DNA of 64,000 nt, taken from Macrostomum hystrix. Lineage: Eukaryota; Animalia; Platyhelminthes. The notes beneath the pieces were generated by a model, which worked only from the letters and a program-made list of their open reading frames with translations, was not told where the DNA came from and did not search any database. Made by a program: the position numbers and the translations under genes. Shown here in pieces: positions 9,142-57,100 of this stretch. The stretch lies in assembly GCA_950097015.1 (NCBI GenBank), contig CATNEN010000002.1, positions 8,246,001 through 8,310,000 of the forward strand, in the 5' to 3' direction. The first letter of the stretch is position 1. Each line of letters starts with the position of its first letter.

Positions 9142-15342
<6,201 letters not shown>

Positions 15343-29150: not shown

Positions 29151-32100
29151 TGTTCTCTTCAGCGAGAAAGACATAAGAGTTTTAAAAAAAAGGTCTTTGA
29201 TCTCTCTTTCTTTATCTTTGGCTCCCGTCTGGGCCACAATATATTTTTCTTAGCTGAGCGAGCCGGACGATGAAAAATACTCAAACCAAAAAACCTTCAC
29301 AAAAACTCATACGCGCACACAGAAAACTCTTATAACAATGCCAGTCGCGGAGTGGGGCGGACGGACAAGGGGGTAAGAAAAACCACGCACGAAACATCAA
29401 CCCCTCGCCAAACACTGGCCTACACCTCTCATCACAACATCCCCCCCTTCCTGACAGGACATGTCAGTCACAAAGACAAGCAACAGGAAAACCGCCGGAA
29501 GAGAAGGGGTGCAAAAACAGAAACAAACTATAACTTTACCCACCACCACGAAAATAGAAAAACGCGAAAATGACAAAACAATGCGCGAGAACACGAAATA
29601 TGTTGTACTGAACGTTACGCAATCGACCCCAAAAAACAGGAAACCAAACAAAAGAAGAATGAAAATCAAAGGAATGAAAATTCGAACCAACCAAAATGTT
29701 GTTGCACTAAGAGCAGGCGATAGCGTCGCAAAGCCACTCCACGAGTAATAGTCAATAGACACAAAGGCTCGTCGTAATGTCAGTGGAAGCGAAATTTAGA
29801 AAACTACGTCTTGCAAACTTGGTGATTAATTTGAAGTTATTATGAAAAAGGTGAATCAAACAAATCTCAAACTTTATGGCAAAAGTAGACCAAATAACTT
29901 AATATGAAAAAAACTAACATCGCTATCCAAGCCGAAAGTCGACATCAATTGTCAAAAGCAAAACTACGGTCTAACTGACCTACGCACGCAATCATTACCC
30001 CTCAATGAGGCATAACTTGCTCACAGGCCGCACAAGCTGTGTTTCACCAACTTGGACCTGGGCAACCCGGACTCGGCCGTCTCGTCCCGGGTAGACTCGC
30101 AGTACTCGCCCCAGTGGCCAGTGTCCACGGGGTGTGTCTGCTTTTACAACAAGCACGACATCGTCGAGCCGCACATCGCGTTGTGGTGCCATCCACTTAG
30201 TTCGCGGTTGGAGTCCCGGCAGCCACTCGCGCATCCAGCGTCGCCAAACGTGTCGCACCAGCTCTTGGACGCGCCGCCAACGCCGCCTCGGATCAACTGC
30301 GACGTCGCTTGGAACTTCAGGTGCAAACTGGCCGCCCGCTTGTCCGATCAGAAAGTGGTTTGGCGTCAGAGGCTCCTCGTCTCTAGGGTTGGCCGATTGA
30401 TAGGTGATTGGGCGCGAGTTGATCAGCGCCTCGGCTCCGGTGATGGCTGACTGCAGTTCTTCATCGTTGACATCAGCGTTGCCCAGGATCGCGTGCAGCG
30501 CCCGCTTCGCCGCACGAATCATCACTTCGTGTGCGCCGCCAAAATGCGGCGCTGCCGGTGGCTGGAATCGCCAACTGATGTGATGACGCACAGTCTCGCG
30601 GCTGACTCTCGCCTTGTCCAGCTCTTCAAGCAGCCGCAGCTCTTCTGCACCTTTGACAAAGTTGCCGCCATTGTCCGAATGCACAGTCTTGGGCAAGCCT
30701 CGCCGGTTCACCATTCGATAGAATGCATTTAAGAATGCGTCCGCGTCAAGACTGTATGTCATTTCAAGATGAACCGCGCGAGTCTCTAGACAGGTAAACA
30801 GAGCCAAGTAACGCTTCTGCCTCTTTTTGAATCGTCCTTGAACGGTGATGAAGGGTCCGCCCATGTCGACGGCTACGTTCGTGAAGGCCTTCAAGGAGCC
30901 TTCCAGCCGTGCATCAGGCAACGGGGCCATCTGTTGCGAAATGGGACGGGCCTTTTCTCTTCTACAAGCAGCACATTCCACTTCCCATTCACGGATGGCT
31001 TCCCTGGCACTAATGACCCAAAACTTTGCTGAAAGTGCAGCCAGCACTTGATTGGTACCGCCATGACGCTGATCCTCATGATGCTGCTTAATGATGAGCT
31101 TAGTCAGCCAATGCTTCCTTGGCAAGATGGCCGGGTGCCTAGCAGCAAACGGTAACTGTTGCCTGAACTTCAAGCGACCGTCCACTCGTAGGATCCCTGT
31201 TGCGTCGACAATAGGTTGCAAGCAGGTCAGCCTCTTGTCACTCAACGCATCAGCCTTGAACTCTTCCTTCTGAGCCATTCTAATCAACCGCTCTTCTACT
31301 TCATTCAGCTCATCCACCGAGAGGTCTCCACCGCTGCGGTGCGCCTGGGTCTTCTGGCAGTTACGGATGAATCGCAGGACCCAAGCCGTGATGCGTTGTA
31401 GTCTGTAAAAACTGGAGAATCGGTCCGGCTTAAGCCGCCAGTCTGCCTCATCGGTCAACTCTGCAGAAGCCACAAACACCGCGTGGGCTTGATGCTCCTG
31501 GTCGCTGGCTGATTCTATTCGTCGAGTGCTCATCTCCCGCATTTCTGGAGCTATTGGGATCGGTGTCTCCGGCCAACTGTTTGAGTCTAGCATCAAGAAC
31601 GCCGGTCCGCACCACCAAAGCTCGCCTTCTATCAACTCTTGCACTCTGCAGCCGCGCGACGCCACATCCGCTGGGTTCAAACCCGTCGGCACATACCGCC
31701 ATTGTCTAGGACGCACCTGCTGCTGGATGAAAGCGACGCGGTTAGCCACGAACGGCTTAAATGATCGGCTCTGCCTACGAATCCACCACAAGACATTGTG
31801 GCTGTCACTCCAAAACACTCCAGTCTCCAGTCCAACCTCCAATGCTTCAGCCACTGCTCTCGCTAACCGCAGTCCTAAGACCGCCGCCATCAGTTCCAGT
31901 CGCGGAATGCTAACTGCCTGCAGGGGTGCCACCTTCGCCTTTGCTGCCACAAATCGGACCGAAACATCCATCGCGCTTACACTTCGCAGATAAACAACGG
32001 CACCGTAGGCCTCCTGAGACGCGTCCACGAACGTGTGCAATTCTGTTGAACCATTTTCAGGTCGAAGACAGCGGGGCACGGATATTTCTCCAGCCTTTGA

Positions 32101-35100
32101 CAATTGCCTCGTCCACATTGATGCTTGCTCGGCCAACTCTGGTTCCAACGCTTCATCCCAGCCGACGCCTTGCTGCCACGCCAGCTGCAACATTAGCTTC
32201 CCTTTAATCACCACCGGGGCAAGGAAGCCGCAGGGATCGAACACTTCGGCGACCCGCCGCAGAAGCAGCCTCTTTGTCATTGTCTGGTTGACAATGCTCG
32301 CCTCGCTGATTGAGACTCCTAGAACATCCTCCTTGGCATTCCAATTCACTCCGAGCGCCTTCGTGGTGCGAGCCTCGCCCTTCAACAGCAACTCTGCACG
32401 TTCAGCGCGATCTTCTAACGGAATCTGACGGAGCACTTCGGCCGAGTTTGACATCCACTTGCAAGCACGCATGCCGGCCTTGCTCCAGAGTTCCACCAGT
32501 TGTTCGTACAGCTTCACCGCTTGACCAACATCCGCCACGGAATCGAGACTATCATCCATATAAGTAGAGCTAAGCACGGTGGCAGCCGCTAGCGGTAGTT
32601 GCTCCTGATGGTCTCTCGCATTCTCCTGTGCCACAAACTGAGCCAAAAACGGCGAGCAGTTGACTCCGAACACGACACTGCAGAACTCGTATCGCTTTGG
32701 ATCTTTTTTCAAGTCCAACTCTCGCCAAAGGAAGCGAAAGAATCTCCTGTCGGCAGGCGCAAGTCGAACTCTAAGGAACATTTCTTCAATGTCACAGGCT
32801 AGTGCGATGGGATGCTTTCGGAACCTGAGGAGCACCTTCAACAGGTCCTGCTGCAACTTCGGTCCAGGGTGAATGGTGTCATTCAGACAGACTCCTCCGC
32901 ATCGCGCAGATGCATCGAAAACAATTCGCACCTTTGTTGTTTCCTTGTCAACTCGAACAACAGCAAAGTGCGGCAAAAACCACTCACTCGACGGATGTTG
33001 TTCGTTGCTATCAACCTCACGAATGTAACCCTTAGCCAGATGTTTGTCAATGACGGACTGATACGACTTGGCCAGTTCTTGATCCTTCAAAAGGCGTTTC
33101 TCAGTGCTCATCAGGCGCTGCTCTGCGGCTTGTCTATTCCTCGGTAGGTCTTCAGGGTTTGTCTTCCAGGGGATGGACACCTGGAAACGGCCTCCCTCCA
33201 CCTTCAAGGTCGCGCGTGTCATCTCGACAACTTTCTGCTCTTCGGTTGTCATTCTGGCCTGGACTCCGCCTTCTGGAACCTCGTCAACCTCCCAGAGCTT
33301 CCGTATCAGGGACGAAGCCTCACTCTCCGCTGCCAACGCAAAGAACGCCTGCTGGTGCGCCTCTCCGATTGTTTCGACTCGATCTACTGGCCCCACACAG
33401 GTCCATCCGATTGGCGTCAGTCTGGCAATTGGCTCTCCAGGTTGGCCACCTACCTCCCGACAGGCAAAGTGTAGATCCGCATGGTCAACGCCGATCAGCA
33501 TGTCGATCGTCTGCTTCCCCTCGATTTTGTCAAAGGGCACCCCGCGCAGGTGGGCCCAGCGTTTCGAAAGCAGACTCCAATCTACCGCTTGCATCCCGCC
33601 CGTCACCTTTTCAGTCGTGTGCGCCGTCACTCTTGTTCGGAAGGCTCCGTCTAGACTGCGAATGTCAACTTCAACCGGAATCGTCTGAAAGGTGCTCACT
33701 TGTCCATTCAGAACCTTAACAGTCATGGATTCGAACTTGCCGTCAAGACCGAGTTCCGCTGCTACATCTGAATTCAAATACGAGCGGGTGCTCGCGTCGT
33801 CCAGGAGGGCGTTCACTCGGACCTCCCGTTCTCCGTTGGCTAGAATGATCGGCACTGTCCGCAACGCAATCGATGACGAGTTTCTGGCGAGTAGGGTGCA
33901 CGACTCCTGCGAACCGTTTCTTTTCACATTCTGCTCTTGGACAGCCATCGGCTTCTCGATCGTCTTTGGCGACCCCCCTTCGTGGTGGTACGCTGCTGAC
34001 TTCACCTGCACTCGTGGGTGCAGCAGTCGATGATGCTTCGCCTTGCAGCCCTCTACATTGCAGGATGCCACTCGCTTGCACTCTCCTAGGCGATGGTTAG
34101 CTCCTAAACAGCAGAAGCACAGTCGCTTGTCTCGGACAGCCGCCCACCTAGCTTCTGGCTCCATTCGTTGAAACCTCGAGCAAGCCCACACACCATGTGG
34201 TGCTCCACAGAAGCTACAGCCTTTGCGCTCCACCACTCGCTCACCACTCTGGCTACTCAAACTTTCCAGTTTTCCGAAATGCGTTCGCGCTGCGGGCTCT
34301 CCTCGATACACACTCAGTCGCACCTTTGCTCCACTGTCCCTCCCTACATCGCCTGATGAAGCCACGCCTCTCACGGCCTCACACGCCACCGTCAGATACT
34401 CCGCTTCCTTCAGAAGCCATTGATGCAGCACAATGAGTGAGTCTTCGCGCCTAGATTCTCCTACCCACCGATGAAAACGAGTCAATGTTTCTGCTGGCAG
34501 CTTCTTCTGAACTCTTAAGTACATCAGTCCGTTGTTGTTCAATTCACTCTCTCGCCCTGCCGCCCTCAGATTAACTACCGTCACATCCAGTAAATCTGCA
34601 AGTTTCTTTAGTTGCACCGCGTTCTCTGACTGAATTGGTCGGAAGTTGTCTAAATCTTCCAGTGCGAGCATCAACCTGCGCCGCTCCCCGCCGTACTCTC
34701 GCTCAAGCCGTTCAAGCGCCGCTCTGTACGCAAATTCTGAGTAGCCTAGATTGGCTATAAGTCTTAAGGCCTCACCCTGCAGTGACTGGCGCAATTGCAA
34801 TAGTTTGTAAGCATTAGAGGAGGGTGCCGCGTCAACACAGGCATAAAATGCGGCTCTCCAACCCTCATACTGCCTTTTGTCACCGCTAAACACTGGAATG
34901 GCCACTCGCTGTAGCTGCCGCCACATATCTTGCCCTACGGCCTCAGCCGGCCCTTGACTGTACATTCCAGTCCGTTGGTATGATTGGCCAGCCTGCCACT
35001 CCATTTGAGGTTGGTGTTCAACCCTCTCAGCGCCTATTGCAGACTTCCACCCACTCACTTTGTCTCCACGGACATTGTACACTTCTCCGGTTTGAGTAGG

Positions 35101-36090
35101 CTGCTTCACGGCACTCTCGCTAGGCCTCATTCCCTTGCCTCCAACTCTCGACTCAAAATCTGCTCTTCTAGCTGCGCTGACATCAACATTATTGCTGTTC
35201 TCCGACCAATCGGCTCCAATCGCAAGGCTCTGTTCATTAGCAACCATTGCCAGTCTTTCCATCTCATTCTCCATCTCCCGAAGTCTAGCTTCATAGTCTT
35301 CTTTCATCCTTCGCTGACGTTCTCCTATTTCCGCCCTCCGACTCAGTGCCGCTTCCACCTCCTTCCGCCGCATCCCTCTCTCTTCATAATTCACACTCTC
35401 TGATTCAGTTTGCCACGTCTTCTTTCTCAAATCAGCAATCAAGCTCACTACCTCACCAAACTCGCTTTCTAGTGTCTCCAGCTCCTTGATCGTACGTCGG
35501 CGTAGCGGCAGATTGTCTTCGGCGAGTTCCAGCAGCTTCTCCAACTCCGCAGTGGCACTCTCGAAAAGCTTCTCCAGCAGAATCATTTGTTGTTGTACTT
35601 CGGCGATCTCCTGGCGTCCGATGGCGATCTGCTGCACCAATTGATTTCTCGCCTTGGTAAAGGCAGTCTTGGCTTTCGTCTTAGCGGCCTTCACGACCAT
35701 AATTTGCTCCTCCTGAGCATCGACCTCGTCCTCCTGCTTGTCCACGTCGTTTCCGTCTCTAGACATTGTTGGTTGTTTAACCACGCTCTGCTACCAGTTT
35801 ATGTTCTCTTCAGCGAGAAAGACATAAGAGTTTTAAAAAAAAGGTCTTTGATCTCTCTTTCTTTATCTTTGGCTCCCGTCTGGGCCACAATATATTTTTC
35901 TTAGCTGAGCGAGCCGGACGATGAAAAATACTCAAACCAAAAAACCTTCACAAAAACTCATACGCGCACACAGAAAACTCTTATAACAATGCCAGTCGCG
36001 GAGTGGGGCGGACGGACAAGGGGGTAAGAAAAACCACGCACGAAACATCAACCCCTCGCCAAACACTGGCCTACACCTCTCATCACAACA
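29151..36090 (-). mobile_element. Full-length BEL/Pao LTR retrotransposon
   Basis: 289-bp LTRs at 29151-29439 and 35802-36090 (TGTT...AACA) with no differences seen by eye. 5-bp TSD GTAGG at 29146-29150 and 36091-36095. PBS TGGTAGCAGAGCGTGGTT (35796-35779) resembles the complement of an initiator tRNA-Met 3' end. PPT GGAAGGGGGGGA at 29451-29440. Confidence 0.97.
29995..35766 (-). CDS. BEL/Pao gag-pol polyprotein (about 1920 aa)
   Basis: Uninterrupted ORF, first ATG at 35766. Contains a DUF1759-like gag, three Cys/His knuckles (CSFCGAPHGVWAC; CFCCLGANHRLGEC; CNVEGCKAKHH), protease LLDDAS, RT YMDD, Pao RNase H FVDAS..KAKVAP..IPRLEL, and integrase (zinc finger, VDMGGP, SDNGGNF, GGAHE). Confidence 0.97.
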   Translation of the reverse strand: MSRDGNDVDKQEDEVDAQEEQIMVVKAAKTKAKTAFTKARNQLVQQIAIGRQEIAEVQQQMILLEKLFESATAELEKLLELAEDNLPLRRRTIKELETLESEFGEVVSLIADLRKKTWQTESESVNYEERGMRRKEVEAALSRRAEIGERQRRMKEDYEARLREMENEMERLAMVANEQSLAIGADWSENSNNVDVSAARRADFESRVGGKGMRPSESAVKQPTQTGEVYNVRGDKVSGWKSAIGAERVEHQPQMEWQAGQSYQRTGMYSQGPAEAVGQDMWRQLQRVAIPVFSGDKRQYEGWRAAFYACVDAAPSSNAYKLLQLRQSLQGEALRLIANLGYSEFAYRAALERLEREYGGERRRLMLALEDLDNFRPIQSENAVQLKKLADLLDVTVVNLRAAGRESELNNNGLMYLRVQKKLPAETLTRFHRWVGESRREDSLIVLHQWLLKEAEYLTVACEAVRGVASSGDVGRDSGAKVRLSVYRGEPAARTHFGKLESLSSQSGERVVERKGCSFCGAPHGVWACSRFQRMEPEARWAAVRDKRLCFCCLGANHRLGECKRVASCNVEGCKAKHHRLLHPRVQVKSAAYHHEGGSPKTIEKPMAVQEQNVKRNGSQESCTLLARNSSSIALRTVPIILANGEREVRVNALLDDASTRSYLNSDVAAELGLDGKFESMTVKVLNGQVSTFQTIPVEVDIRSLDGAFRTRVTAHTTEKVTGGMQAVDWSLLSKRWAHLRGVPFDKIEGKQTIDMLIGVDHADLHFACREVGGQPGEPIARLTPIGWTCVGPVDRVETIGEAHQQAFFALAAESEASSLIRKLWEVDEVPEGGVQARMTTEEQKVVEMTRATLKVEGGRFQVSIPWKTNPEDLPRNRQAAEQRLMSTEKRLLKDQELAKSYQSVIDKHLAKGYIREVDSNEQHPSSEWFLPHFAVVRVDKETTKVRIVFDASARCGGVCLNDTIHPGPKLQQDLLKVLLRFRKHPIALACDIEEMFLRVRLAPADRRFFRFLWRELDLKKDPKRYEFCSVVFGVNCSPFLAQFVAQENARDHQEQLPLAAATVLSSTYMDDSLDSVADVGQAVKLYEQLVELWSKAGMRACKWMSNSAEVLRQIPLEDRAERAELLLKGEARTTKALGVNWNAKEDVLGVSISEASIVNQTMTKRLLLRRVAEVFDPCGFLAPVVIKGKLMLQLAWQQGVGWDEALEPELAEQASMWTRQLSKAGEISVPRCLRPENGSTELHTFVDASQEAYGAVVYLRSVSAMDVSVRFVAAKAKVAPLQAVSIPRLELMAAVLGLRLARAVAEALEVGLETGVFWSDSHNVLWWIRRQSRSFKPFVANRVAFIQQQVRPRQWRYVPTGLNPADVASRGCRVQELIEGELWWCGPAFLMLDSNSWPETPIPIAPEMREMSTRRIESASDQEHQAHAVFVASAELTDEADWRLKPDRFSSFYRLQRITAWVLRFIRNCQKTQAHRSGGDLSVDELNEVEERLIRMAQKEEFKADALSDKRLTCLQPIVDATGILRVDGRLKFRQQLPFAARHPAILPRKHWLTKLIIKQHHEDQRHGGTNQVLAALSAKFWVISAREAIREWEVECAACRREKARPISQQMAPLPDARLEGSLKAFTNVAVDMGGPFITVQGRFKKRQKRYLALFTCLETRAVHLEMTYSLDADAFLNAFYRMVNRRGLPKTVHSDNGGNFVKGAEELRLLEELDKARVSRETVRHHISWRFQPPAAPHFGGAHEVMIRAAKRALHAILGNADVNDEELQSAITGAEALINSRPITYQSANPRDEEPLTPNHFLIGQAGGQFAPEVPSDVAVDPRRRWRRVQELVRHVWRRWMREWLPGLQPRTKWMAPQRDVRLDDVVLVVKADTPRGHWPLGRVLRVYPGRDGRVRVAQVQVGETQLVRPVSKLCLIEG

Positions 36091-44400: not shown

Positions 44401-45808
44401 AGCCCTTCTCTTATTAGCTAATTAACACTAAAATATCAGCTGTTTAGCTTCGACTTTTGAATCGTCTTGTCTTTGTTATTTTCGAGTTACGGCAATAGAA
44501 TCTCTCGCAAAGAGTAGGACACCGCTCACGAGAGCAGAAGTTGCCAGTTTTTTTCTGGAAAAACTACTTTTCAAAAGTAGGTATTGTACATTTTAAACCA
44601 TGGCTTTCACGACCCAAAGTCATCTGCAAGAGGCTCTGGGTCTCAAACGTAGCGTAAATCAGATTTATGACTGCTGTCGGACGCAGTTTGTTTTTATAAA
44701 CGCTTCAAAATCGACTCTTTTGAAAATTAGCCAAATTAATTTGCGATGAGTTTATCAACAGATTGCAGATTACTAAAAAACCGCAGCAATGCTTTACATG
44801 CGACACAAATGAATTTGAACCGTCCTTTGAGCTCACTAAAAATAGGACTTGCCTCACGCAGACGGAATTTCTGTAGCAGGCCCTGTGCGGGAGACACCAG
44901 CGAAAGTTTCTGGTACAGAACTGCTCAGGCGAGAAGAGACTAGATAAGGCTGTCTTGCTAAATCTAAAAAAAAACAGAAGACACAATCAATTAAAGTGCA
45001 AGAAAACAGTAAAATAGGCATTATTTTTATGAGAGCAGACGAAAAGAAGAGCAGAAGTGAGACTGAGTGCAAGAAGGTCAGTTTGTTCATTTTAGTAGAC
45101 TGCTATAGAGACAAATGCAATATGCAATAAATTGTGGATACCATCACAATGGTCCTGGTTCAAAGGCAGGTGTGCGCTCAGTTGAGCCGAGTTTGCGACA
45201 GACAATGGCGTAGTGGGTCTGTCGCAACAGGTTTGACTGGGTTCGGCAAAGTGGCGGACTTTTCGACAGGCTTATTAGCGAGGGGAGGAGCAGGGGCTGA
45301 CGGGGCCGCGTCCGTCAAAATGCGGCTTCAATTTTCTCTGCTCCTAACCTGGGCTCCAGCATCAGCCGGAGAGCGGCACTTTGAGGGTCGCGCACCGAGC
45401 TGGAACTCGTCCAGCCGATTGTTCTCTCTCTCATTTTTTATGCTGTTAGCTGGATGCTCTAGGCTTCGATTTTGCCTTTTCCAGAAGCTAGGAAAATAAA
45501 GAAACTAAGAGAGAGAGAGGAGTGAGAGAGAAAACGCGTTCAAGCACAGAGCCGCTGTAGAAAGCACGCTATAGCGGCCTGCCTTCTCCAGTCTTACCCT
45601 TGAACTGCCACCCTGCCCTGGTCATGTCAATATCTCACGGGGGGCCGCTCCACCTCCACCTCGATAAAAAGGCAGACAGAGTGTCTTAAGCAGTGACGTT
45701 TTGAATAACCAGACATAAGGCAGCTCGTTTCTGAAGCTTTACTAGAGCGTTTAGAAACGAGAAAATCCTAGAGCAGAGGACGAGACGTCAAGCAATTTAG
45801 CAGCCGAC

Positions 45809-48800
45809 ATGAGCAGCCTGTGGCTCGCCTACCCTACAGTGGCGAAGCTCCACGCACTGCTTGACGACGGTGCTAGCGCTGACAGCCGCCAGGGCGGTCA
45901 GACGCTGCTGCACCGAGCTGCGGCCGACAACAATATCGAAGTCATCCGCCTGCTGCACGAGCGCGGCGCCAATCTCAACGTCCTGGACACTGGAGGAAAG
46001 TCGGCGCTCAATGTGAGCATGGAAAAGCGCCATTTTGAGGCGGCTGCTGAACTACTCGAGTTGGGAGCGGATCCCAACAATGCCACATTGAACACGGAGT
46101 CCACTCTTCACCAGGCGGCCGCTCTCAAGGACTCACGCTTCATCCAGCGCCTGCTCGCGCACGGAGCCAAGTGCGACACCGCTGACCGACTGAACGACTG
46201 GCCAATCCACCGAGCAGTGCTGGAGGAGTACTTGGACACTGTCGGCATCATCCTACACAGCAGCCCAGAGCACATTAATACCAATGGAAACAGAGGCCTA
46301 ACGCCGCTGCACATCGCGGCCACCAATGGAAACGCAGAGCTGTTTGCCATTCTTATCGAGCACGGAGCGGACGTTGGGGTAAAGGACTTGCGTGGCCGAA
46401 CACCGCTTGATATAATTATCAAAAACCAGGACAGTCCGATTCTTGATACCTACGGATATCTTCTGGCGAACAAGGTCGTCAAGTGTCCCGAGGCCAAAGG
46501 CTTCAGCACAGTGTTTACCACGCAAGCTGCCAAGGATTTTCTGGACACTTTGACAAAGATCGACAATGAGTACAGGCGCACCTTTGTTGAAAATGATTCT
46601 GGTGTTGAGTACTTCCAGAACCGCCTCGACGAGACTACAAACGAAATGCTTCTGAAGTACATCGAGTCCGATGAAAGAATCGACATAAACGAGTTTGTGC
46701 AGATTATAATTCGCGCTGTGAGAAACGGACTGGTGGATGAGATCATCTCAAAGAAACTGGTGCCGAAAATAGCAGAGAGCATTTTTCGACACGTGCTAGT
46801 ATCTGAAAACGAGACTCTACTTCAGGAGATAATGAATCTCGGAGTTCTCTGGGGCAAAATCGTTCATTACCTTGAACATAACATTGTCAGAGCTTACGAA
46901 AAGACTCTGGTGGCCAAGCAGGTCGGAATTCGAGGCCTAGTCTGGCGAGAATGCCTAAAAGACGAGGATGACGAAGTTGAACGCGAGGAGGAGAAGCAAA
47001 CGAGCATTCACGAGTCTAATGATGAAGTAATACGCGAGCAGCCCATGCGGGTTTCCTACGACAAGTTGCACTTGCTCGTGTCCAAGACCACCAAGTTGTG
47101 GCAGCTGAGGCACACCGACTTTGTAGACGAGCGGACCGACCACTGCGACATGCACACGCCGGTCGAGGTGATGAAGGACCCGGTCCAGACGTTGGCCATG
47201 TGGAGTGTACTCACTGGTCGGTTTAAGCTAACACCGCATCTGCTGCGTCAGGAACCGTACGACCTGATCCCGCAGGCGCTTCTCATGGCCAAACTGTTGC
47301 GCTCTCTAAGTATACTCAGAGGCATTGAAGATGTCTGCAGAAATAAGGCAATCAACATGGCGAACACTTGCGAGAATGTCGCTATTCAAGCCTTAAGACG
47401 AGTCAAAGAGTTCGACACGTCGCAGAACAACATTCTGACCATGGAGTACTTGAGGCTGCCTCTGCGATCCTACGGTGACTATGATGCGATCGACTTAGCC
47501 GCCCGGGGCGAGTCCAGCAACTTTGTCACAATAGACGTTGTGCAGGATACGCTGGACATGTTCTGGTACTCGGACTTCTTCTTCGTCCGCAGCAACTTCT
47601 GGAAGATGGAGGGCGCCATCATTCTGGGCTTTCTGCCTCCATTTATGCTGCTGCTGCCGCTGATCATGGAGAGCTTCCGGAAGGAGTCGCCAACCTTCAA
47701 GAATCCCGAGCTCTTGCAAGACAGCAAATTCGTGCAGGTGAAGAGCGCCCTGCACAGCCATGATGAACAGCACGGACACGGGCATGGACACGGGCAAAGG
47801 CATGGTTCATCGGCCGACCAGCAGCACGAGATGACAGGCGTGGCCGAACGGCTTCTGCCGCAGAGGGCGGAGGTTGAAGTGATCCCCAGCAAGCCATCGT
47901 ACATTCGACGCGTCGTAAAGGAGTTGAACGCCTTCTATGACATACCCTGCGTGAAGTTCCGCTTCCACGTAACAGCTCACGTTCTCTTTGTTCTGCTTCT
48001 ATCCTTTGTCGTGATGCGCCTGTTCGGCAAGCGGATCAACACCTGGGAGGTCATCTGCTACTTGTGCCTCTTCGGCTTCCTAGTTGAGGAGATCAACGAG
48101 ATCATAAAGAGTAGAAAAGACGAGTCGCTGGCGTCCTACTTCTCGGACGGGTGGAACCTGATTGACCTGACTGCCATTCTATGCGGCATCACTAGCTTCC
48201 TCTTGAGGCTGGACGACGAGGCGGTCGGCAATTCCGAGAACGTTCGATACTGGGCCCTTGTGCTGCTGTCAACAACCTGCCTGGTCTACTGGATTCGCCT
48301 GCTGTTTGTGTCCGTTATTCTGCAGAGCCTCGGTCCAAAGCTGAAGATGATGGCGCTAATGGTCAAGAAAGACTTCCTGCCGTTCCTATACATACTGTTC
48401 ATCCTGATGATTGGCTTCGGAGTGGTATTCCAGGCGCTGCTGTATCCGCCCACGAATTTCGGCCCCTCCTCAAACAGCCCCGGCGATTCGGACAACGACA
48501 CGTCCATAGAGGCACAAGAGATCGCCGTGCGGATGTTCCAGACGACCTTCTTCATGATCGTTGGCGAGTATGGCCTGGGAGACAAGGAGCCGTGCCCGGA
48601 TGACAAGTCAGCCGCCGCCAAGGAGGACTGCGTGCACAAGACAGGCTCCCTGCTGGTCACTAACCTCTTCATGGTCATCTACATCGTGATTGTGCAGATC
48701 CTCTTGCTGAACGTCATCGTGGCCATGTTCAGCGAGACGATTGACGCAGTGAACCGAGAGTCTACGGCCATGTGGCAGTTTGAGAAGTACGACCTGACGC

Positions 48801-49201
48801 AGGAGTTCTTCATGCGCTCCAAGCTGCCGCCCCCGTTCAATGTGCTGCTGGAGATCCGGCGGCTCATTGCTTACATCATCAGGCGCAGCCGGCGGGGCAA
48901 GAACAGCGGCGACAAGAAGGTCGCCCTGCGCAGCAACGAGAAGAGCGAGGTGGAAGTGTTCCTGTACTACCTGTACTACCAGGCTATCAGCTGCCGCGGC
49001 CAGCGCTCTACATTCAGGGGTGTGGTAATTGATGAAGAGGACTTGGACGAGGGCAACAAGATAGTCTACGAGCAGATCAAGGACATCCAGAAGGAGCTGA
49101 AGCGACTGCGCAAGCTGGAAACAATGGTGCAGAAAATGAACGCTGGAAGCCGGCCGCAGCAGCCGCAGCGCCTTCCACCCCTGGCTAACCAAGAGTACTG
49201 A
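45809..49201 (+). CDS. Intronless TRP cation channel: N-terminal ankyrin repeats plus TRPM-type MHR4, S1-S6, TRP box and coiled coil (1130 aa)
   Basis: About 5-6 ankyrin repeats (QTLLHRAA, TLHQAA, PIHRAV, TPLHIAA, TPLD) in aa ~10-205. TRPM-like DPVQTLAMWSVL..ALLMAKLLRSL (aa ~457), FYDIPCVKF, LGPKLKMM..D, pore FFMIVGE, S6 LLLNVIVAMFS, TRP box MWQFEKY..LPPPF (aa ~988). Confidence 0.93.
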   Translation: MSSLWLAYPTVAKLHALLDDGASADSRQGGQTLLHRAAADNNIEVIRLLHERGANLNVLDTGGKSALNVSMEKRHFEAAAELLELGADPNNATLNTESTLHQAAALKDSRFIQRLLAHGAKCDTADRLNDWPIHRAVLEEYLDTVGIILHSSPEHINTNGNRGLTPLHIAATNGNAELFAILIEHGADVGVKDLRGRTPLDIIIKNQDSPILDTYGYLLANKVVKCPEAKGFSTVFTTQAAKDFLDTLTKIDNEYRRTFVENDSGVEYFQNRLDETTNEMLLKYIESDERIDINEFVQIIIRAVRNGLVDEIISKKLVPKIAESIFRHVLVSENETLLQEIMNLGVLWGKIVHYLEHNIVRAYEKTLVAKQVGIRGLVWRECLKDEDDEVEREEEKQTSIHESNDEVIREQPMRVSYDKLHLLVSKTTKLWQLRHTDFVDERTDHCDMHTPVEVMKDPVQTLAMWSVLTGRFKLTPHLLRQEPYDLIPQALLMAKLLRSLSILRGIEDVCRNKAINMANTCENVAIQALRRVKEFDTSQNNILTMEYLRLPLRSYGDYDAIDLAARGESSNFVTIDVVQDTLDMFWYSDFFFVRSNFWKMEGAIILGFLPPFMLLLPLIMESFRKESPTFKNPELLQDSKFVQVKSALHSHDEQHGHGHGHGQRHGSSADQQHEMTGVAERLLPQRAEVEVIPSKPSYIRRVVKELNAFYDIPCVKFRFHVTAHVLFVLLLSFVVMRLFGKRINTWEVICYLCLFGFLVEEINEIIKSRKDESLASYFSDGWNLIDLTAILCGITSFLLRLDDEAVGNSENVRYWALVLLSTTCLVYWIRLLFVSVILQSLGPKLKMMALMVKKDFLPFLYILFILMIGFGVVFQALLYPPTNFGPSSNSPGDSDNDTSIEAQEIAVRMFQTTFFMIVGEYGLGDKEPCPDDKSAAAKEDCVHKTGSLLVTNLFMVIYIVIVQILLLNVIVAMFSETIDAVNRESTAMWQFEKYDLTQEFFMRSKLPPPFNVLLEIRRLIAYIIRRSRRGKNSGDKKVALRSNEKSEVEVFLYYLYYQAISCRGQRSTFRGVVIDEEDLDEGNKIVYEQIKDIQKELKRLRKLETMVQKMNAGSRPQQPQRLPPLANQEY

Positions 49202-49765
49202 CGGATCGGACTTTCATGCTGGCGTCTACTTCAACGCGAGTCATCACTTCTGTTGTTGCGATTTTCAGCCAACATTCTATTGGCTAGATTCTATATCGCC
49301 AACATAACTGGCTAGACTAGACAAATATTTATTTAGTAGGGAAAATGAGAGACTTTTAGTTGACGATTTTTAACACACTCACCCAGATGTTTCGCATAGT
49401 TTTTAATTGTTTACTCCATCAGCTCGTTAGTAACAATCGACTCGACATAAAAAAACAACAGAAATCAATCTTGTTAGCCATAATAAGCTAGTTCCATCTG
49501 ATGTTTGACTCAACTTCGGTCGGAACTCCAAGGATTTGCAAAGCTTCGCCATGCTTCCGGAGTGGCCCAAAAGTACATGCCCTGCTCAGCCATTCTTCTC
49601 ATTCCGCAGTTTTCCGGCCCGCAAGCCGGGTTTTTCTGTTATTTGCGTCAAATATTTTTGTTCTCATTTTTTAGTAGACAATTATTATTATTTAAATATA
49701 CAAATCCAGAAGGCTTTATTAAAACTTTTAAACTATGACTATGATTAAATATGTAGAAGAATATA

Positions 49766-50062
49766 GGCAGAGAGTAGACATTGAGGTAGGCAGAGGGTAG
49801 ACATTGAGGTAGGCAGAGAGTAGACATTGAGGTAGGCAGAGGGTAGACATGGAGGTAGGCAGAGGGTACACATGGAGGTAGGCAGAGAGTAGACATCGAG
49901 GTAGGCATAGGGTAGACACTGAGGTAGGCAAAGAGTAGACATTGAGGTAGGCAGAGGGTAGACATGGAGGTAGGCAGAGGGTAGACATGGAGGTAGGCAT
50001 AGAGTAGACATTGAGGTAGGCATAGGGTAGACATGGAGGTAGGCAGAGGGTAGAAATGGAGG
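49766..50062. repeat. Minisatellite, 23-bp unit
   Basis: Unit GTAGACATTGAGGTAGGCAGAGG. Confidence 0.93.
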
Positions 50063-50391
50063 TACTGGTGAAGGAGGTAAAAATAAATCACAAACAGAAG
50101 TCGCTTCAAGACATTTTAAAAATTACTGCAGACGAAAATCTTATTGCGAGGCTGCGAACCAAATGTTTTATTTTGGCACAGCGGCAGCCATGATTTTGCG
50201 CTTGGGGCTGAATCAGACTGAAAAATACTGGGCATTGCTTCCAGATGGAAGATGGTAATGTCACAGTCATTGAAAAAAATCATTTAGTAGCAGAAAAGAA
50301 GAACAAATTGAACAGGCCTTAGTACAGGCCTGTTAATACAAGTTAATACAAGAGTTCAAATATAAGATACTCGTAATTATTCTCGACCAGC

Positions 50392-51123
50392 TGATTCCAG
50401 CACCCACCACCCCACAGCTCAGTCCAGCACCCACCACCCACCACCCCATAGCTCAGTCCAGCACCCACCACCCCATAGCTCAGTCCAGCACCCACCACCC
50501 CATAGCTCAGTCCAGCACCCACCACCCCACACCTCAGTCCAGCACCCACCACCCCATAGCTCAGTCCAGCACCCACCACCCCATAGCTCAGTCCAGCACC
50601 CACCACCCCATAGCTCAGTCCAGCACCCACCACCCCATAGCTCAGTCCAGCACCCACCACCCCACACCTCAGTCCAGCCCCCACCACCCCCGCAGCTCAG
50701 TCCAGCACCCACCACCCCCGCAGCTCAGTCCAGCACCCACCACCCCATAGCTCAGTCCAGCACCCACCACCCCATAGCTCAGTCCAGCACCCACCACCCA
50801 CCACCCCGCAGCTCAGTCCAGCACCCACCACCCCGCAGCTCAGTCCAGCACCCACCACCCCATAGCTCAGTCCAGCACCCACCACCCCATAGCTCAGTCC
50901 AGCACCCACCACCCCATAGCTCAGTCCAGCACCCACCACCCCATAGCTCAGTCCAGCACCCACCACCCCACACCTCAGTCCAGCCCCCACCACCCCCGCA
51001 GCTCAGTCCAGCACCCACCACCCCCGCAGCTCAGTCCAGCACCCACCACCCCACAGCTCAGTCCAGCACCCACCACCCCCGCAGCTCAGTCCAGCACCCA
51101 CCACCCCGCAGCTCAGTCCAGCA
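50392..51123. repeat. Minisatellite, 27-bp unit, abutting the SNX stop codon
   Basis: Unit CTCAGTCCAGCACCCACCACCCCATAG. Confidence 0.95.
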
Positions 51124-54100
51124 GCCGCAGGGCCAGCAGGCAGTCGATGGCGCAGGCGGAAACAAGTCGCCGATTGGCCGCAGCCGAGCCGAGGACCCGG
51201 CGCGCTTCGCTCGCGACTCGGTCCGGCCACCGGCTTGGCAGCAGGCGGAATATCGATGGCGGCTCTAACTGCAGCTGCTGAGTGTCTTCGCCGACCTGAA
51301 ACTCCGGGCGGATGATCATGGTGAGACGGTCCAGCAAGCGAGTGAGGCGCAGTGGAGTCAGCAGTCGATGGCTCACTAGGTGGATGGCCCTGAAGGACAA
51401 TGGGATCAAATTTAAGGATTCGAATAAGGGATCTATAAGGTAGGCTTCGCAGTAGCGATTGCACCAGGGATGACATAAATAACTACACTAGAGACTAAAT
51501 TAGGGATTACACCTGGCAATAGCAATTGGGAAGGGGTTGCATTAAAGATTGGACAATGGATCGCATTAAGGATTTTATTACGGATTTTATCAGGGATCAC
51601 AAAAGGAATTCCATTAAAGATTGCATCAGGTGTTGCATTGGAATTGCATTGCGTGGCATTGGGACTGCATCAGGGAATGGATTATGGATCGTTTTAGGGA
51701 TTGCATTAGGGATTGTATAACTGATTGGATTACGGAATGCATACAGGGTTGCAGTAAAGATTGAATTAGGGATGGTATAAGGAATCTAATTATCAATTGC
51801 ATTAGGGACTGAATTACAGATTGAATTAGGGATTGAATTAGGGATTGCATTAGGGATTGCATTAGGGATTGCATTAAGGGTTCTATTAGGGATTGCATTA
51901 GGGATTGCATTAAAGATTGATTAAGGGTTGTATTAGGGATTGCAATAAAGATTGATAAAAGGTTCTATCAGGGATTGCATTAGGGATTGCATTAAGGGTT
52001 CTATTAGGGATTGCATTAGGGATTGCATTAGGGATTGCATTAAGGGTTGTATTAGGGATTGCATTAAAGATCGATTAAAGGTTGTATTAGGGATTGCATT
52101 CTGGGTTGCTATGAATGCTCATCGACTCAAAGAGACCCAGACTGGGTGTCACAACAGCTGACCACAATGGGGGACTAGCAAGCGTTTGAGTTCATTCGCT
52201 CAAAAGAATGAATTGAGCAGTTAAAAATAACAGAAGCAAACAAGTGCAACAGAAGCAGTTAGAAGTGGAAACCCTTAAAATAACAGACGCTGAAGTGGCT
52301 CGTCACAAAGCCCGAGCTGCGGCAGACAGCGGTTTAAAAAGTTCTTTCAACTGTTGATGACAGATTCAGCAGCCTAACAAACTGACTGAGACTGGCAGTG
52401 CGATTTGAGTTCAACGAGTTTACTGCCTGAGTTTACTGTCTGGTTACAATCAGACGAAAAGTAATTTCAATAGCCACACTCATCGGTAAGCTAGTCACAC
52501 TCATGGGTAATCTAGTCACACTCATGGGTAAGCTAGTCACACTCATGGGTGGGTGAGTCACACTCATGGGTAAGCTAGTCACACTCATGGGTGGGTGAGT
52601 CACACTCATGGGTAAGTTAGTCACACTCATGGGTAAGCTAGTCACACTCATGGGTGGGTGAGTCACACTCATGGGTAAGTTAGTCACACTCATGGGTAAG
52701 CTAGTCACACTCATGGGTAAGCTAGTCACACTCATGGGTAAGCTAGTCACACTCATGGGTAAGCTAGTCACACTCATGGGTAAGCTAGTCACACTCATGG
52801 GTAAGCTAGTCACACTCATGGGTAAGCTAGTCACACTCATGGGTAAGCTAGTCACACTCATGGGTAAGCTAGTCACACTCATGGGTAAGCTAGTCACACT
52901 CATGGGTAGGCTAGTCACACTCATGGGTAAGCTAGTCACACTCATGGGTAGGCTAGTCACACTCATGGGTAAGCTAGTCACACTCATGGGTAGGCTAGTC
53001 ACACTCATGGGTAAGCTAGTCACACTCATGGGTAGGCTAGTCACACTCATGGGTAAGCTAGTCACACTCATGGGTAAGCTAGTCACACTCATGGGTAAGT
53101 TAGTCACACTCATGGGTAGGCTAGTCACACTCATGGGTAGGCTAGTCACACTCATGGGTAAGCTAGTCACACTCATGGGTAAGCTAGTCACACTCATGGG
53201 TAAGCTAGTCACACTCATGGGTAGGCTAGTCACACTCATGGGTAAGCTAGTCACACTCATGGGTAGGCTAGTCACACTCATGGGTAAGCTAGTCACACTC
53301 ATGGGTAAGTTAGTCACACTCATGGGTAAGCTAGTCACACTCATGGGTAAGTTAGTCACACTCATGGGTAAGCTAGTCACACTCATGGGTAAGCTAGTCA
53401 CACTATGGGTAAGCTAGTCACACTCATGGGTGGGTGAGTCACACTATGGGTCGGTGAGTCACACTATGGGTGGGTGAGTCACACTATGGGTCGGTGAGTC
53501 ACACTATGGGTCGGTGAGTCACACTATGGGCCGGTGAGTTACACTATGGGTGGGTGAGTCACACTATGGGTTGGTGAGTCACACTATGGTTTGGTGAGGC
53601 ACACTATGGGTTGGTGAGTCACACTATGGGTTGGTGAGTCACTCATGGGTGGGTGAGTCACACTATGGGTGGGTGAGTCACACTATGGGTGGGTGAGTCA
53701 CACTATGGGTGGGTGAGTCACACTATGGGTGGGTGAGTCACACTATGGGTGGGTGAGTCACACTATGGGTTGGTGAGTCACACTATGGGTTGGTGAGTCA
53801 CACTATGGGTGGGTGAGTCACACTATGGGTGGGTGAGTCACACTATGGGTGGGTGAGTCACACTATGGGTGGGTGAGTCACACTATGGGTGGGTGAGTCA
53901 CACTATGGGTGGGTGAGTCACACTATGGGTGGGTGAGTCACACTATGGGTGGGTGAGTCACACTATGTGGGTGAGTCACACTATGGTTGGGTGAGTCAGT
54001 GCAGGTGACTAAAGTTGGGGTTAGTAAATCAGGCAGTTTGCAGGTAGAGTGGTGAATCTCTATAAGCTAATTACCTGGCAGCCAGCAGAGCGCTGAGCTG

Positions 54101-57100
54101 GCACAGCGGAGTCAGCAGGAGCGGCCATCGCAGACAGTCTGGGCAGTACTGGCCGGCCAGCAGCTGGGTCAGCCGGTAGGCAGTCAACTCAATGTCGCGA
54201 AGCGTCTCAACTGACGAGTCGGACGGCTGGCGCTGGGGCACCGGCCGAAAACTGGGCGGAGAGCCTGCGGGAGAGCGGTAGGTCGGATGATCAGGTTTAC
54301 AATAATATAAATAATAACTGCAGGAGGGCTGCGGGCAATGGCACATCATGTGGTGACAATAGACCAGCAGCCAGCAAAGAGGCAATTGTTTTGTTTGAGG
54401 CAAAACTGTGAAATTGTTTTAGGGGCGCTTAAGTTTAGGTTCGAAAGATGGGTCAAGAAATCCTTCGGAAAGGGATTGTTCAAAGGATTATTTCGAGAGA
54501 TGGATCAGGGGATTTTTCGAGAAATTGGTCATGGGATTCTTTCGAGGGATGTGTTCCAAGGATGGGTCAAGGGATCCTTTGCAAAGGAATGGGTCATGGG
54601 ATTCTTTCGAGGGATGTGTTCCAAGGATGGGTCAAGGGATCCTTTGCAAAGGAATGGGTCATGGGATTCTTTCGAGAGATGTGTTCCAAGGATGGGTCAA
54701 GGGATCCTTTGCAAAGGAATGGGTCATGGGATTCTTTCGAGAGATGTGTTCCAAGGATGGGTCAAGGGATCCTTTGCAAAGGAATGGGTCATGGGATTCT
54801 TTCGAGGGATGTGTTCCAAGGATGGGTCAAGGGATCCTTTGCAAAGGAATGGGTCATGGGATTCTTTCGAGAGATGTGTTCCAAGGATGGGTCAAGGGAT
54901 CCTTTGCAAAGGAATGGGTCATGGTATTCTTTCGAGGGATGTGTTCCAAGGATGGGTCAAGGGATCCTTTGCAAAGGAATGGGTCATGGGATTCTTTCGA
55001 GAGATGTGTTCCAAGGATGGGTCAAGGGATCCTTTGCAAAGGAATGGGTCATGGGATTCTTTCGAGAGATGTGTTCCAAGGATGGGTCAAGGGATCCTTT
55101 GCAAAGGAATGGGTCATGGTATTCTTTCGAGGGATGTGTTCCAAGGATGGGTCAAGGGATCCTTTGCAAAGGAATGGGTCATGGTATTCTTTCGAGGGAT
55201 GTGTTCCAAGGATGGGTCAAGGGATCCTTTGCAAAGGAATGGGTCATGGGATTCTTTCGAGAGATGTGTTCCAAGGATGGGTCAAGGGATCCTTTGCAAA
55301 GGAATGGGTCATGGTATTCTTTCGAGGGATGTGTTCCAAGGATGGGTCAAGGGATCCTTTGCAAAGGAATGGGTCATGGGATTCTTTCGAGGGAAGTGTT
55401 TCAAGGATGGGTCAAGGGATCCTTTGCAAAGGAATGGGTCATGGTATTCTTTCGAGGGATGTGTTCCAAGGATGGGTCAAGGGATCCTTTGCAAAGGAAT
55501 GGGTCATGGTATTCTTTCGAGGGATGTGTTCCAAGGATGGGTCAAGGGATCCTTTGCAAAGGAATGGGTCATGGTATTCTTTCGAGGGATGTGTTCCAAG
55601 GATGGGTCAAGGGATCCTTTGCAAAGGAATGGGTCATGGGATTCTTTCGAGTGATAGTTCTGGCGATAGTATAATATTCGATTACATGAACGGATCTGCT
55701 TAAAATGTGGACTGAAATATTAGGTTCGAAATTTCTAACAATGAAATTAAAAGCAGCAGCAGCCACAGACTTACAGTTGCCTCTGTCCTCAGCGAGCTTC
55801 TCTAGCGTTATCTTCTCAGCTCCGATCAGCTCTGACGCGTAGGGAATCTAAAAGAGCAAAGTCAACAAAAAGTTTAACGATTAAATAGACAAAACTATTT
55901 TTAATACTGAATGCCGTGAGTTAAAGAAAGAAAGCAACGAAACAAATACAAAATGAATGAATTTCCAAGAAAAAAGTTTTTTAATTAAACTGTAGCGACA
56001 TTTATAAAATTTTTACGATAAAAAACTAACGTTGTACAGATTTAGGTGACGCTAAAACTATTGGTGGAAGACAATTTATTATGAATGACTAGCCATGCCT
56101 ATGGGTTAGAGGGTGTTCACCTGAACAGAGAACTCAAACTCCAGCTGAGGCTGAGCAGTATGCTCATCGCGAGCCTCCGAGCTGCTCTCGCCGGCTGCTG
56201 CCTGGGACTCGTCAAACGCGGTTGCGAAAGGGACTGCGCTTGAAGAAGCCGACGAAGTTGAGGTTGCTGAGAAAAACTTTGGCAGAAGATCGGCCACGTC
56301 AGACAGCACCTGGACAATAGACATTGGATTGAGGATTATCGCGATGCAACAATGCCCAACAGCCAGTAGGAATTCGTCGCTACTCACCCGCTCCAGTTTT
56401 GGCTTGATCCCGCCCGGCAAGTCGCCGCCGACATCGACTCCAGGTCCTCCTGGCTGAGCGCCGCTGCTGCCGCAGTCACTGTAGTCCAAGAAGGCCTTCA
56501 GCTCGGCAGAGGCGCAAACCTCGGCAATGTCAATCAGAGCCTTGACGGCGCAGCGGTGCAAGAGGGAGAACATTAGCATACTACTCACAGTACGATAAGT
56601 AGAAAGCTGAATAGAAAGCTGAATAAGATTATTTGTCCATTCACTGCTAAAGAAATTCGTGCATTTAGTTCCAGCCACCAATGGTTAGAAGTTCAGAATT
56701 CGGACTGAGAGGTCAGGAGTTCGAATCTCAGCACGGTGGAAACAATTTCTGTTCCCAATTCACCCAGCTGTAAAACGGGTGCTGGCATTAGCTTCGGCGG
56801 TGCCACTGGCTGTGCATCTTGCCAAACTGAGCAGTAAGTCTACTTTTAGTAGTTTTCATCTCTTCGTGGAAAAAGATTAAGTATAGTCAGCACGCCACTC
56901 AGTGAATGCGTACTGCAGGTGACATTTAAGTTAAGTAGTCACGTTACCGAAGTAATTTGTATTAGTGGTGACAATTATTCAATTGACGAACGGAATGTTA
57001 ATAAGTGGTAAAAAAGAGTCACGGATATAGTCAATATAGCGAATATAGTCACGTGACCAAACGTAGTCACGTGACCAAACGTAGTCACGTGACCAAACGT

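Follow-up and report, generated by a model that had tools for sequence, protein, structure and literature searches.

The gene examined here lies at positions 45809-49201 (+) of a 64,000-nucleotide stretch of the Macrostomum hystrix genome (assembly GCA_950097015.1, contig CATNEN010000002.1, positions 8,246,001 to 8,310,000), referred to below as the window. We conclude, with a probability of roughly 0.85, that it encodes a subunit of a flatworm-specific TRPM branch that lacks SLOG (MHR1/2) and combines a short ankyrin array and diverged MHR3/MHR4 with a six-helix channel of the TRPM type, followed by TRP helix and coiled coil, and that this branch includes the channel TRPM-MCLZ of parasitic flatworms. 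Within the branch, the window gene belongs to an expansion confined to Macrostomum, whose sister group is the TRPM-MCLZ lineage of the parasites.

A single uninterrupted gene

As the first-pass annotation had stated, the open reading frame (ORF) at 45809-49201 (+) runs uninterrupted for 1130 amino acids (aa), and every motif quoted in that annotation is present in the translation. The gene and its domains are listed below with window coordinates and evidence; boundaries marked AF2 come from a full-length AlphaFold2 (AF2) model built from a 29-sequence family alignment (mean predicted local distance difference test score (pLDDT) 74, predicted template modelling score 0.69).

45693..49714 (+), transcript-like unit of ~4.02 kb, intron-free, with a 5' untranslated region (UTR) of ~116 nt, the coding sequence (CDS) and a 3' UTR of ~511 nt (run contigs)
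45809..49201 (+), single-exon CDS of 1130 aa, TRPM-MCLZ-type ("TRPM-like") channel subunit (ORF, Pfam, PDB matches, HMMER, tree)
45809..46444 (+), ankyrin-repeat domain, aa 1-212, six canonical repeats and capping helices (Pfam Ank_2/Ank/Ank_3/Ank_4/Ank_5; AF2, seven ankyrin-type helix pairs at aa 2-224, pLDDT ~80-90)
46445..47173 (+), partly disordered connector, aa 213-273, and MHR3-like helical domain, aa ~274-455 (AF2 fold search, PF25508; AF2, connector partly disordered to aa ~273, helical domain aa 275-428)
47174..47683 (+), MHR4, aa 456-625 (phmmer, PF25508, pLDDT ~85-92, ratio of nonsynonymous to synonymous substitution rates (dN/dS); AF2, aa 462-626)
47702..47890 (+), disordered His/Gly/Gln-rich loop preceding pre-S1, aa 632-694 in both ORF and AF2 model (pLDDT <50), variable in length between paralogues
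47900..48319 (+), pre-S1 helix and S1-S4 voltage-sensor-like domain, aa 698-837 (residue mapping via S. rodhaini TRPM-MCLZ; AF2, pre-S1 aa 698-710, S1 713-738, S2 745-771, S3 781-806, S4 810-837)
48332..48727 (+), aa 842-973, from the S4-S5 linker through S5 and the pore helix (VGEY, filter-like motif) to S6 (Ion_trans, column conservation; AF2, S4-S5 linker aa 842-851, S5 856-878, pore helix 902-918, S6 944-973)
48740..48895 (+), TRP helix with WQFEKY box and post-TRP LPPPF segment, aa 978-1029 (ORF translation, column conservation; AF2, TRP helix aa 978-1002)
48935..49147 (+), C-terminal helices, aa 1043-1061 and 1076-1113, the latter long and coiled-coil-like (AF2; weak SlyX coiled-coil match)

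Two of the quoted motifs had been misplaced when judged by the AF2 helices: FYDIPCVKF, labelled S1, sits at the pre-S1/S1 junction, and LGPKL..M..D, labelled S5, is the S4-S5 linker.

A 4020-nt contig from public run X5 spans 45693-49712 and a contig from run X6 spans 45710-49714, each with 0 mismatches and 0 gaps, and depth outside 45693-49714 was zero in all four public runs compared with the window. Since the contigs are gapless across this interval, the ankyrin and channel halves share one unspliced mRNA of ~4.0 kb, bearing out the earlier proposal that they belong to one transcript; transcription is deduced here from the contig boundaries and the lack of flanking coverage, the type of the runs (RNA) not being on record. 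The pattern fits RNA. Runs X5 and X6 hold only ~40-47 Mb of contigs apiece. Their contigs on the window begin ~25 nt downstream of a ATAAAAAG-like box and have a common 3' end that is immediately preceded by A/T-rich sequence and followed, 50 nt later, by the next tandem array.

The nearest public protein is M. lignano Mlig022043g1 (P0001), which is 83% identical over the full length and is likewise encoded by one exon (3363 nt). Comparison of the two genes by the Nei-Gojobori method gave a dN/dS of 0.08 overall, with 0.16 in the ankyrins, 0.07 in the linker/MHR3, 0.026 in MHR4 and 0.07 in the transmembrane (TM) and TRP region; because dS (~1.4) is saturated, these values are approximate. Every domain of the window gene is thus under purifying selection. 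These data bear on whether the gene could be an artefact or a dead copy, that is, a mis-joined assembly, two genes read as one or a functionless intron-less retrocopy. Such an origin would suit an intron-less gene in a repeat-rich window with a BEL/Pao retrotransposon 10 kb upstream, but we judge it very improbable given the uninterrupted frame, the end-to-end match of two independent contigs, the single-exon architecture in M. lignano, the recurrence of the domain order in more than 29 proteins of three flatworm groups (see below) and the dN/dS values, which stay low even in the ankyrins. Misassembly, gene fusion and a pseudogene were rejected as candidates on the strength of the contigs, the M. 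lignano single-exon gene and dN/dS.

The core is of the TRPM type

Pfam assigned ankyrin families to aa ~13-212 (Ank_2, 5.5e-25; Ank, 3e-19) and Ion_trans to aa 725-984 (1.7e-18), and matched the TRPM2-like MHR domain PF25508 at aa 383-573 with 26.4 bits against a curated cut-off of 27, a cut-off that is exceeded in paralogues. The same scan of the 1130-aa protein found no SLOG/LSDAT, NUDIX, alpha-kinase or TRP_2 domain. Canonical ankyrins, six or seven by Pfam and AF2, therefore stand where SLOG/MHR1-2 normally sits, and a NUDT9H or kinase tail is missing, both as first described. With phmmer, a SLOG query matched 67 other proteins of the HMMER search described below and left the window protein unmatched, and the MHR4 segment was matched in 73 of 155 TRPM-like proteins.

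When aa 440-1070 were searched against PDB sequences, all 60 listed matches were to TRPM1-8 (E 2e-32 to 2e-23), the strongest (E 2e-32) being TRPM3 and Nematostella TRPM2. Together with the PF25508 match, this upholds the earlier assignment of the core to TRPM rather than TRPC, TRPA or TRPV. The best PDB fold matches of the full-length model were TRPM2, 3, 4, 5 and 8, with NOMPC at rank 3.

The ~250-aa linker between the ankyrins and MHR4, first described as unrecognised, had no match in a PDB sequence search when used alone (aa 209-459), and was identified by structure prediction and fold search. A separate AF2 model of aa 205-625 (pLDDT 77.8) aligned with the MHR3/MHR4 region of twelve TRPM structures over 219-270 residues with Z 12.6-15.1; for example, model residues 113-383 aligned with TRPM5 (9p3n; 219 residues, root-mean-square deviation 3.0), and human TRPM4 aligned over residues 399-711. 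TRPY1 (Z 10.4), NOMPC (8.0) and TRPC (7.2-7.3) were weaker matches. Most of the linker (aa ~274-455) is thus predicted to fold like TRPM MHR3, kept in diverged form, an assignment that rests on a model also containing MHR4. If so, the ankyrins replace MHR1/2 (SLOG) only, and the original view that they stand in place of MHR1-3 holds for MHR1/2 and fails for MHR3, to which both PF25508 and the fold matches point.

A feature search with ESM placed TRPM clusters first (0.92-0.95), followed by TRPC-like clusters at 0.87-0.91. The latter, the third rank of NOMPC in the full-length fold search and a layout resembling the TRPC body plan (short ankyrin array, helical linker, TM region, TRP box, LPPPF-type segment and coiled coil, in that order) are what could be said for membership in an ankyrin-bearing TRPC, TRPN or TRPA family with a superficially TRPM-like core. 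We find that reading scarcely credible: both the TRP_2 domain and the EWKFAR box are missing, the TRPM MHR domain PF25508 is matched instead, both sequence and fold similarity to TRPC fall far below those to TRPM, all 60 of the best PDB sequence matches and the top ESM clusters are TRPM, and in the tree described below TRPN-like proteins lie behind a 100/100 branch. The six or seven ankyrins also differ from the about 29 or 14-17 repeats of TRPN and TRPA.

The window protein shares with canonical TRPMs, of which TRPM3 and the Nematostella and choanoflagellate TRPM2 are the best matches, the MHR3/MHR4 fold, the pre-S1 P..KF motif, the Ca2+-site motif of the voltage-sensor-like domain, the S4-S5 GPKL..M..D motif, a WKFQRY-like TRP box and the C-terminal coiled coil. 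It differs from them in having canonical N-terminal ankyrin repeats and no SLOG/MHR1-2, NUDT9H or kinase, and in falling outside the sampled SLOG-TRPM clade in the maximum-likelihood (ML) tree, although not significantly so by the approximately unbiased (AU) test. The lack of SLOG and NUDIX likewise separates it from TRPS (soromelastatin; SLOG plus Nudix, the ced-11-like clade).

The ankyrin-TRPM architecture is shared among flatworms

An exhaustive HMMER search with aa 209-1070 retrieved 1419 proteins at E <= 1e-3, and the best 150 of them were scanned for ankyrin, linker, MHR4, TM and SLOG segments, with key cases checked in Pfam; a word-index homology search with aa 210-1060 yielded only Macrostomum paralogues and a few weak matches. 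The top ~30 HMMER matches have ankyrins, MHR4 and the channel without SLOG, and SLOG-bearing TRPMs begin at about rank 30. The domain order is common to more than 29 proteins in Macrostomorpha, Trematoda and Cestoda, and among the best 150 matches every named protein of the ankyrin group comes from a flatworm. Macrostomorpha are represented by many M. lignano loci; trematodes by Dicrocoelium, Schistosoma spp., Fasciola, Opisthorchis, Paragonimus, Calicophoron and Trichobilharzia; cestodes by Schistocephalus, Sparganum, Taenia, Echinococcus, Mesocestoides, Anoplocephala and Hymenolepis; and monogeneans by Protopolystoma. The restriction to flatworms covers named members; P0015, P0017 and P0197 come from Logan runs DRR639838 and SRR33002330, and P0023, P0032 and P0033 from MetaClust.

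This layout has been published. Park et al. (J Biol Chem 2023/24, PMC10788528) identified Smp_333650 as TRPM-MCLZ, the meclonazepam-activated channel that is the schistosome target of meclonazepam and has been reported across all parasitic flatworms (PMC10788528, PMC11731825, PMC12861061). TRPM-MCLZ lacks the NH2-terminal MHR1/2 or SLOG domain and carries ankyrin-repeat modules instead (review, PMC11731825). Rohr et al. 2026 (PMC12861061) described 63 orthologues from trematodes, monogeneans and cestodes, noted their N-terminal ankyrin repeats and proposed the name "TRPM-like" because the group clusters beside other TRPMs. One of our ankyrin-group proteins, P0186, is CAH8438365.1, the S. turkestanicum accession given as a TRPM-MCLZ orthologue in PMC10788528, and the cluster neighbouring it includes S. 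mansoni XP_018647895.1. Since the architecture was already described and the window protein groups in the same clade, the original suggestion of a new channel type or undescribed subfamily fails, and TRP classification is unaltered by our finding.

What is possibly new relative to the cited papers is the presence of the family in free-living Macrostomorpha, its expansion there into more than ten lineages, and the intron-less structure of the window gene and its M. lignano counterpart. Free-living flatworms and Macrostomum are absent from the three TRPM-MCLZ papers, a full-text search returned no paper that combines them with TRPM-MCLZ, and Macrostomum is unmentioned in Himmel et al. 2020, which names only acoel flatworms, and in the 2026 TRPM survey in Molecular Biology and Evolution (MBE), which names none.

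Among the collected models, P0169 and P0170 (UniRef models from M. lignano, 2903 and 3003 aa long) and P0013 and P0181 (Opisthorchis and Paragonimus) each contain two complete MHR4 and TM cores. This suggests tandemly duplicated Ank-TRPM-like genes that were merged by annotation; in the trematode models, the two cores may instead correspond to an exon duplication described by Rohr et al. 2026.

Phylogenetic position of the Macrostomum proteins

The tree was inferred with IQ-TREE under LG+C20+F+G4 with posterior mean site frequencies from 81 rows and 384 columns extending from pre-S1 to the TRP helix, and was rooted on two TRPN-like amphioxus proteins (P0007/P0008) on a branch of 4.85 substitutions; support is given as ultrafast bootstrap/SH-aLRT. 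The eleven distinct lineages of Macrostomum ankyrin proteins in the tree, with more among the fragments, form one clade (100/99), in which the window protein pairs with P0001 and then with P0002 and P0003. This clade joins, at 99/93 (31 rows), a TRPM-MCLZ-side clade (100/96) of fourteen TRPM-MCLZ orthologues together with P0015, P0017, P0023, P0033, P0180 and P0197. The sister group of the whole ankyrin clade comprises all 48 sampled SLOG-bearing TRPMs (96/87), the choanoflagellate protein P0039 among them, and P0007/P0008 are split off by a 100/100 branch. When the ankyrin clade was constrained to group with the flatworm-rich SLOG TRPM clade, the topology was not rejected by the AU test (log-likelihood difference 5.8, p 0.227). 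A position of the ankyrin clade robustly outside all TRPMs is therefore unsupported.

With a choanoflagellate sequence inside the SLOG sister clade, taking the tree literally would put the origin of the flatworm clade before that of animals, an implausible age. It would nevertheless agree with an ancient independent TRP lineage that predates the TRPM radiation and kept ancestral ankyrins, the more so as Himmel et al. 2020, who like the MBE survey describe TRPM/TRPS as lacking canonical ankyrin repeats, inferred that ankyrins were lost before the TRPM-TRPS split. We regard such a lineage as improbable: every named member is a flatworm, an origin before choanoflagellates would mean that every other animal lineage lost such channels, the AU test permits a grouping with flatworm-rich SLOG TRPMs, and a lone outgroup on so long a branch invites long-branch attraction. 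Rate or long-branch effects may well explain the sister position, and an exchange of the N terminus specific to flatworms is, we infer, the more economical reading. The Macrostomum members date this ankyrin-for-SLOG exchange to before the split between Macrostomorpha and the lineage of Neodermata.

Several points weigh against placing the window gene in the TRPM-MCLZ branch as a channel of the same kind. The tree contains no named TRPS, TRPC, TRPA or TRPV and has a single kind of outgroup on a long branch; the window gene is a paralogue-clade relative of TRPM-MCLZ and not its 1:1 orthologue; the transcript is deduced from runs whose records do not give RNA as their type; and the functional properties of all Macrostomum members are predictions. 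The properties may also differ, since the window protein has WQFEKY as its TRP box and VGEY with a 3-residue insertion in its pore, where the parasites have WLAGRY/WLADRY and FEVS, respectively.

Further differences from the parasite channels are a full-length identity of only ~21%, a length shorter by about 250 aa, an S2 motif of E..E (also in other Macrostomum proteins) instead of E..Q, and membership in a multi-gene expansion of a free-living flatworm where the parasites have a single orthologue. In their overall build the two agree: N-terminal ankyrins replace MHR1/2-SLOG, MHR4, TRPM-type S1-S6, the TRP helix and C-terminal helices follow, and NUDT9H is missing. Both also have few or no introns, with three exons published for S. 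mansoni (Sm) TRPM-MCLZ and one in the window gene.

How the exchange took place is a matter for a more tentative scenario, which we hold to be possible but unlikely. Early in flatworm evolution, ankyrins may have been added N-terminally to a complete SLOG-bearing TRPM and SLOG then lost, giving a family that is single-copy in parasites and comprises more than ten intron-poor genes, possibly sensory receptors, in free-living macrostomids; P0029 would perhaps be a surviving intermediate. Were this correct, naturally occurring variants of a family targeted by an anthelmintic would be available as a series in a transgenic free-living model.

P0029 (M. lignano PAA85706.1, Mlig003066g1) is a 1781-aa TRPM model in which Ank_2 at aa 133-219 (32.9 bits, above cut-off) is followed by LSDAT_euk (279-539), the TRPM2-like domain and Ion_trans, so that ankyrins and SLOG occur in one protein. 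Its near-identical copies P0176 and P0177 bring the number of gene copies to three, all of equal length. The model could be an intermediate towards the SLOG-less architecture or a fused gene model.

Ligand-pocket residues and predicted function

Published S. mansoni residue numbers were mapped to the window protein through S. rodhaini TRPM-MCLZ, whose residues agree with those expected at 8/8 published positions. The correspondences are as follows.

Sm H827 (S1), window H720
Sm H831 (S1), window H724
Sm E868 (S2), window E761
Sm R943 (S4), window R830
Sm Y864 (S2), window F757
Sm Y1117 (TRP helix), window F1000
Sm Y1038 (pore), window F915
Sm H946 (S4, sets meclonazepam potency), window F833

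The S1 His-His pair, the S2 Glu, the S4 Arg and the S3 WN..D motif are thus conserved with TRPM-MCLZ, whereas the S4 determinant is Phe rather than His and the TRP and S2 Tyr positions are Phe, as they are in most Macrostomum paralogues. E761/E764 in S2 and N783/D786 in S3 form a TRPM-type motif. The spacing of S2 E..E/Q and S3 WN..D in the window protein and the parasites presumably matches that of the TRPM2/4/5/8 Ca2+ site.

F833 is the residue state of cestode sequences, and the Echinococcus granulosus TRPM-MCLZ orthologue with F952 at this position is reported to be meclonazepam-insensitive (PMC12861061). Because its S4 Phe is that of the insensitive cestode channel, the window channel is probably not meclonazepam-sensitive. 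The H946-equivalent residue marks drug sensitivity and not clade membership.

By homology, the window channel would assemble as a tetramer with a non-selective cation conductance that includes Ca2+. Gating likely operates through the S1-S4 cavity, possibly modulated by Ca2+, because the Ca2+-site motif and the His-His-Glu-Arg core of the meclonazepam pocket are conserved. Control by ADP-ribose or other nucleotides is unlikely, since neither SLOG nor NUDT9H is present, and the ankyrin array probably serves as a platform for protein interaction or assembly.

Antischistosomal benzodiazepines have a validated target candidate in TRPM-MCLZ, and the published work on it concerns parasites only. Macrostomum, a free-living flatworm with established transgenesis, is a tractable system in which to address the role of SLOG-less, ankyrin-bearing TRPM-like channels.

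Surroundings of the gene

The following elements flank the channel gene in the window.

29995-35784 (-), BEL/Pao-type long terminal repeat retrotransposon with an uninterrupted 1929-aa ORF (DUF1759, aspartyl protease, RVT_1, Peptidase_A17, integrase zinc-binding and core domains, DUF5641)
49764-50064, tandem array, 23 bp x 13
50388-51123, tandem array, 27 bp x 27, with a 306-bp higher-order period
51532-52100, tandem array, 12 bp x 48
52433-55703, overlapping ORFs of 250-440 aa on both strands

The three tandem arrays, which lie just 3' of the channel gene, give rise to repetitive minus-strand pseudo-ORFs. In Pfam, the ORFs in 52433-55703 gave nothing beyond scattered matches of low complexity (FNIP repeat, TENA fragments), and they are probably repeats in translation and not genes. 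At the counterpart locus of M. lignano (L003, NIVC01001761.1), a PX-domain gene occupies 14876-15363 on the opposite strand, about 5.5 kb downstream of the channel-gene counterpart.

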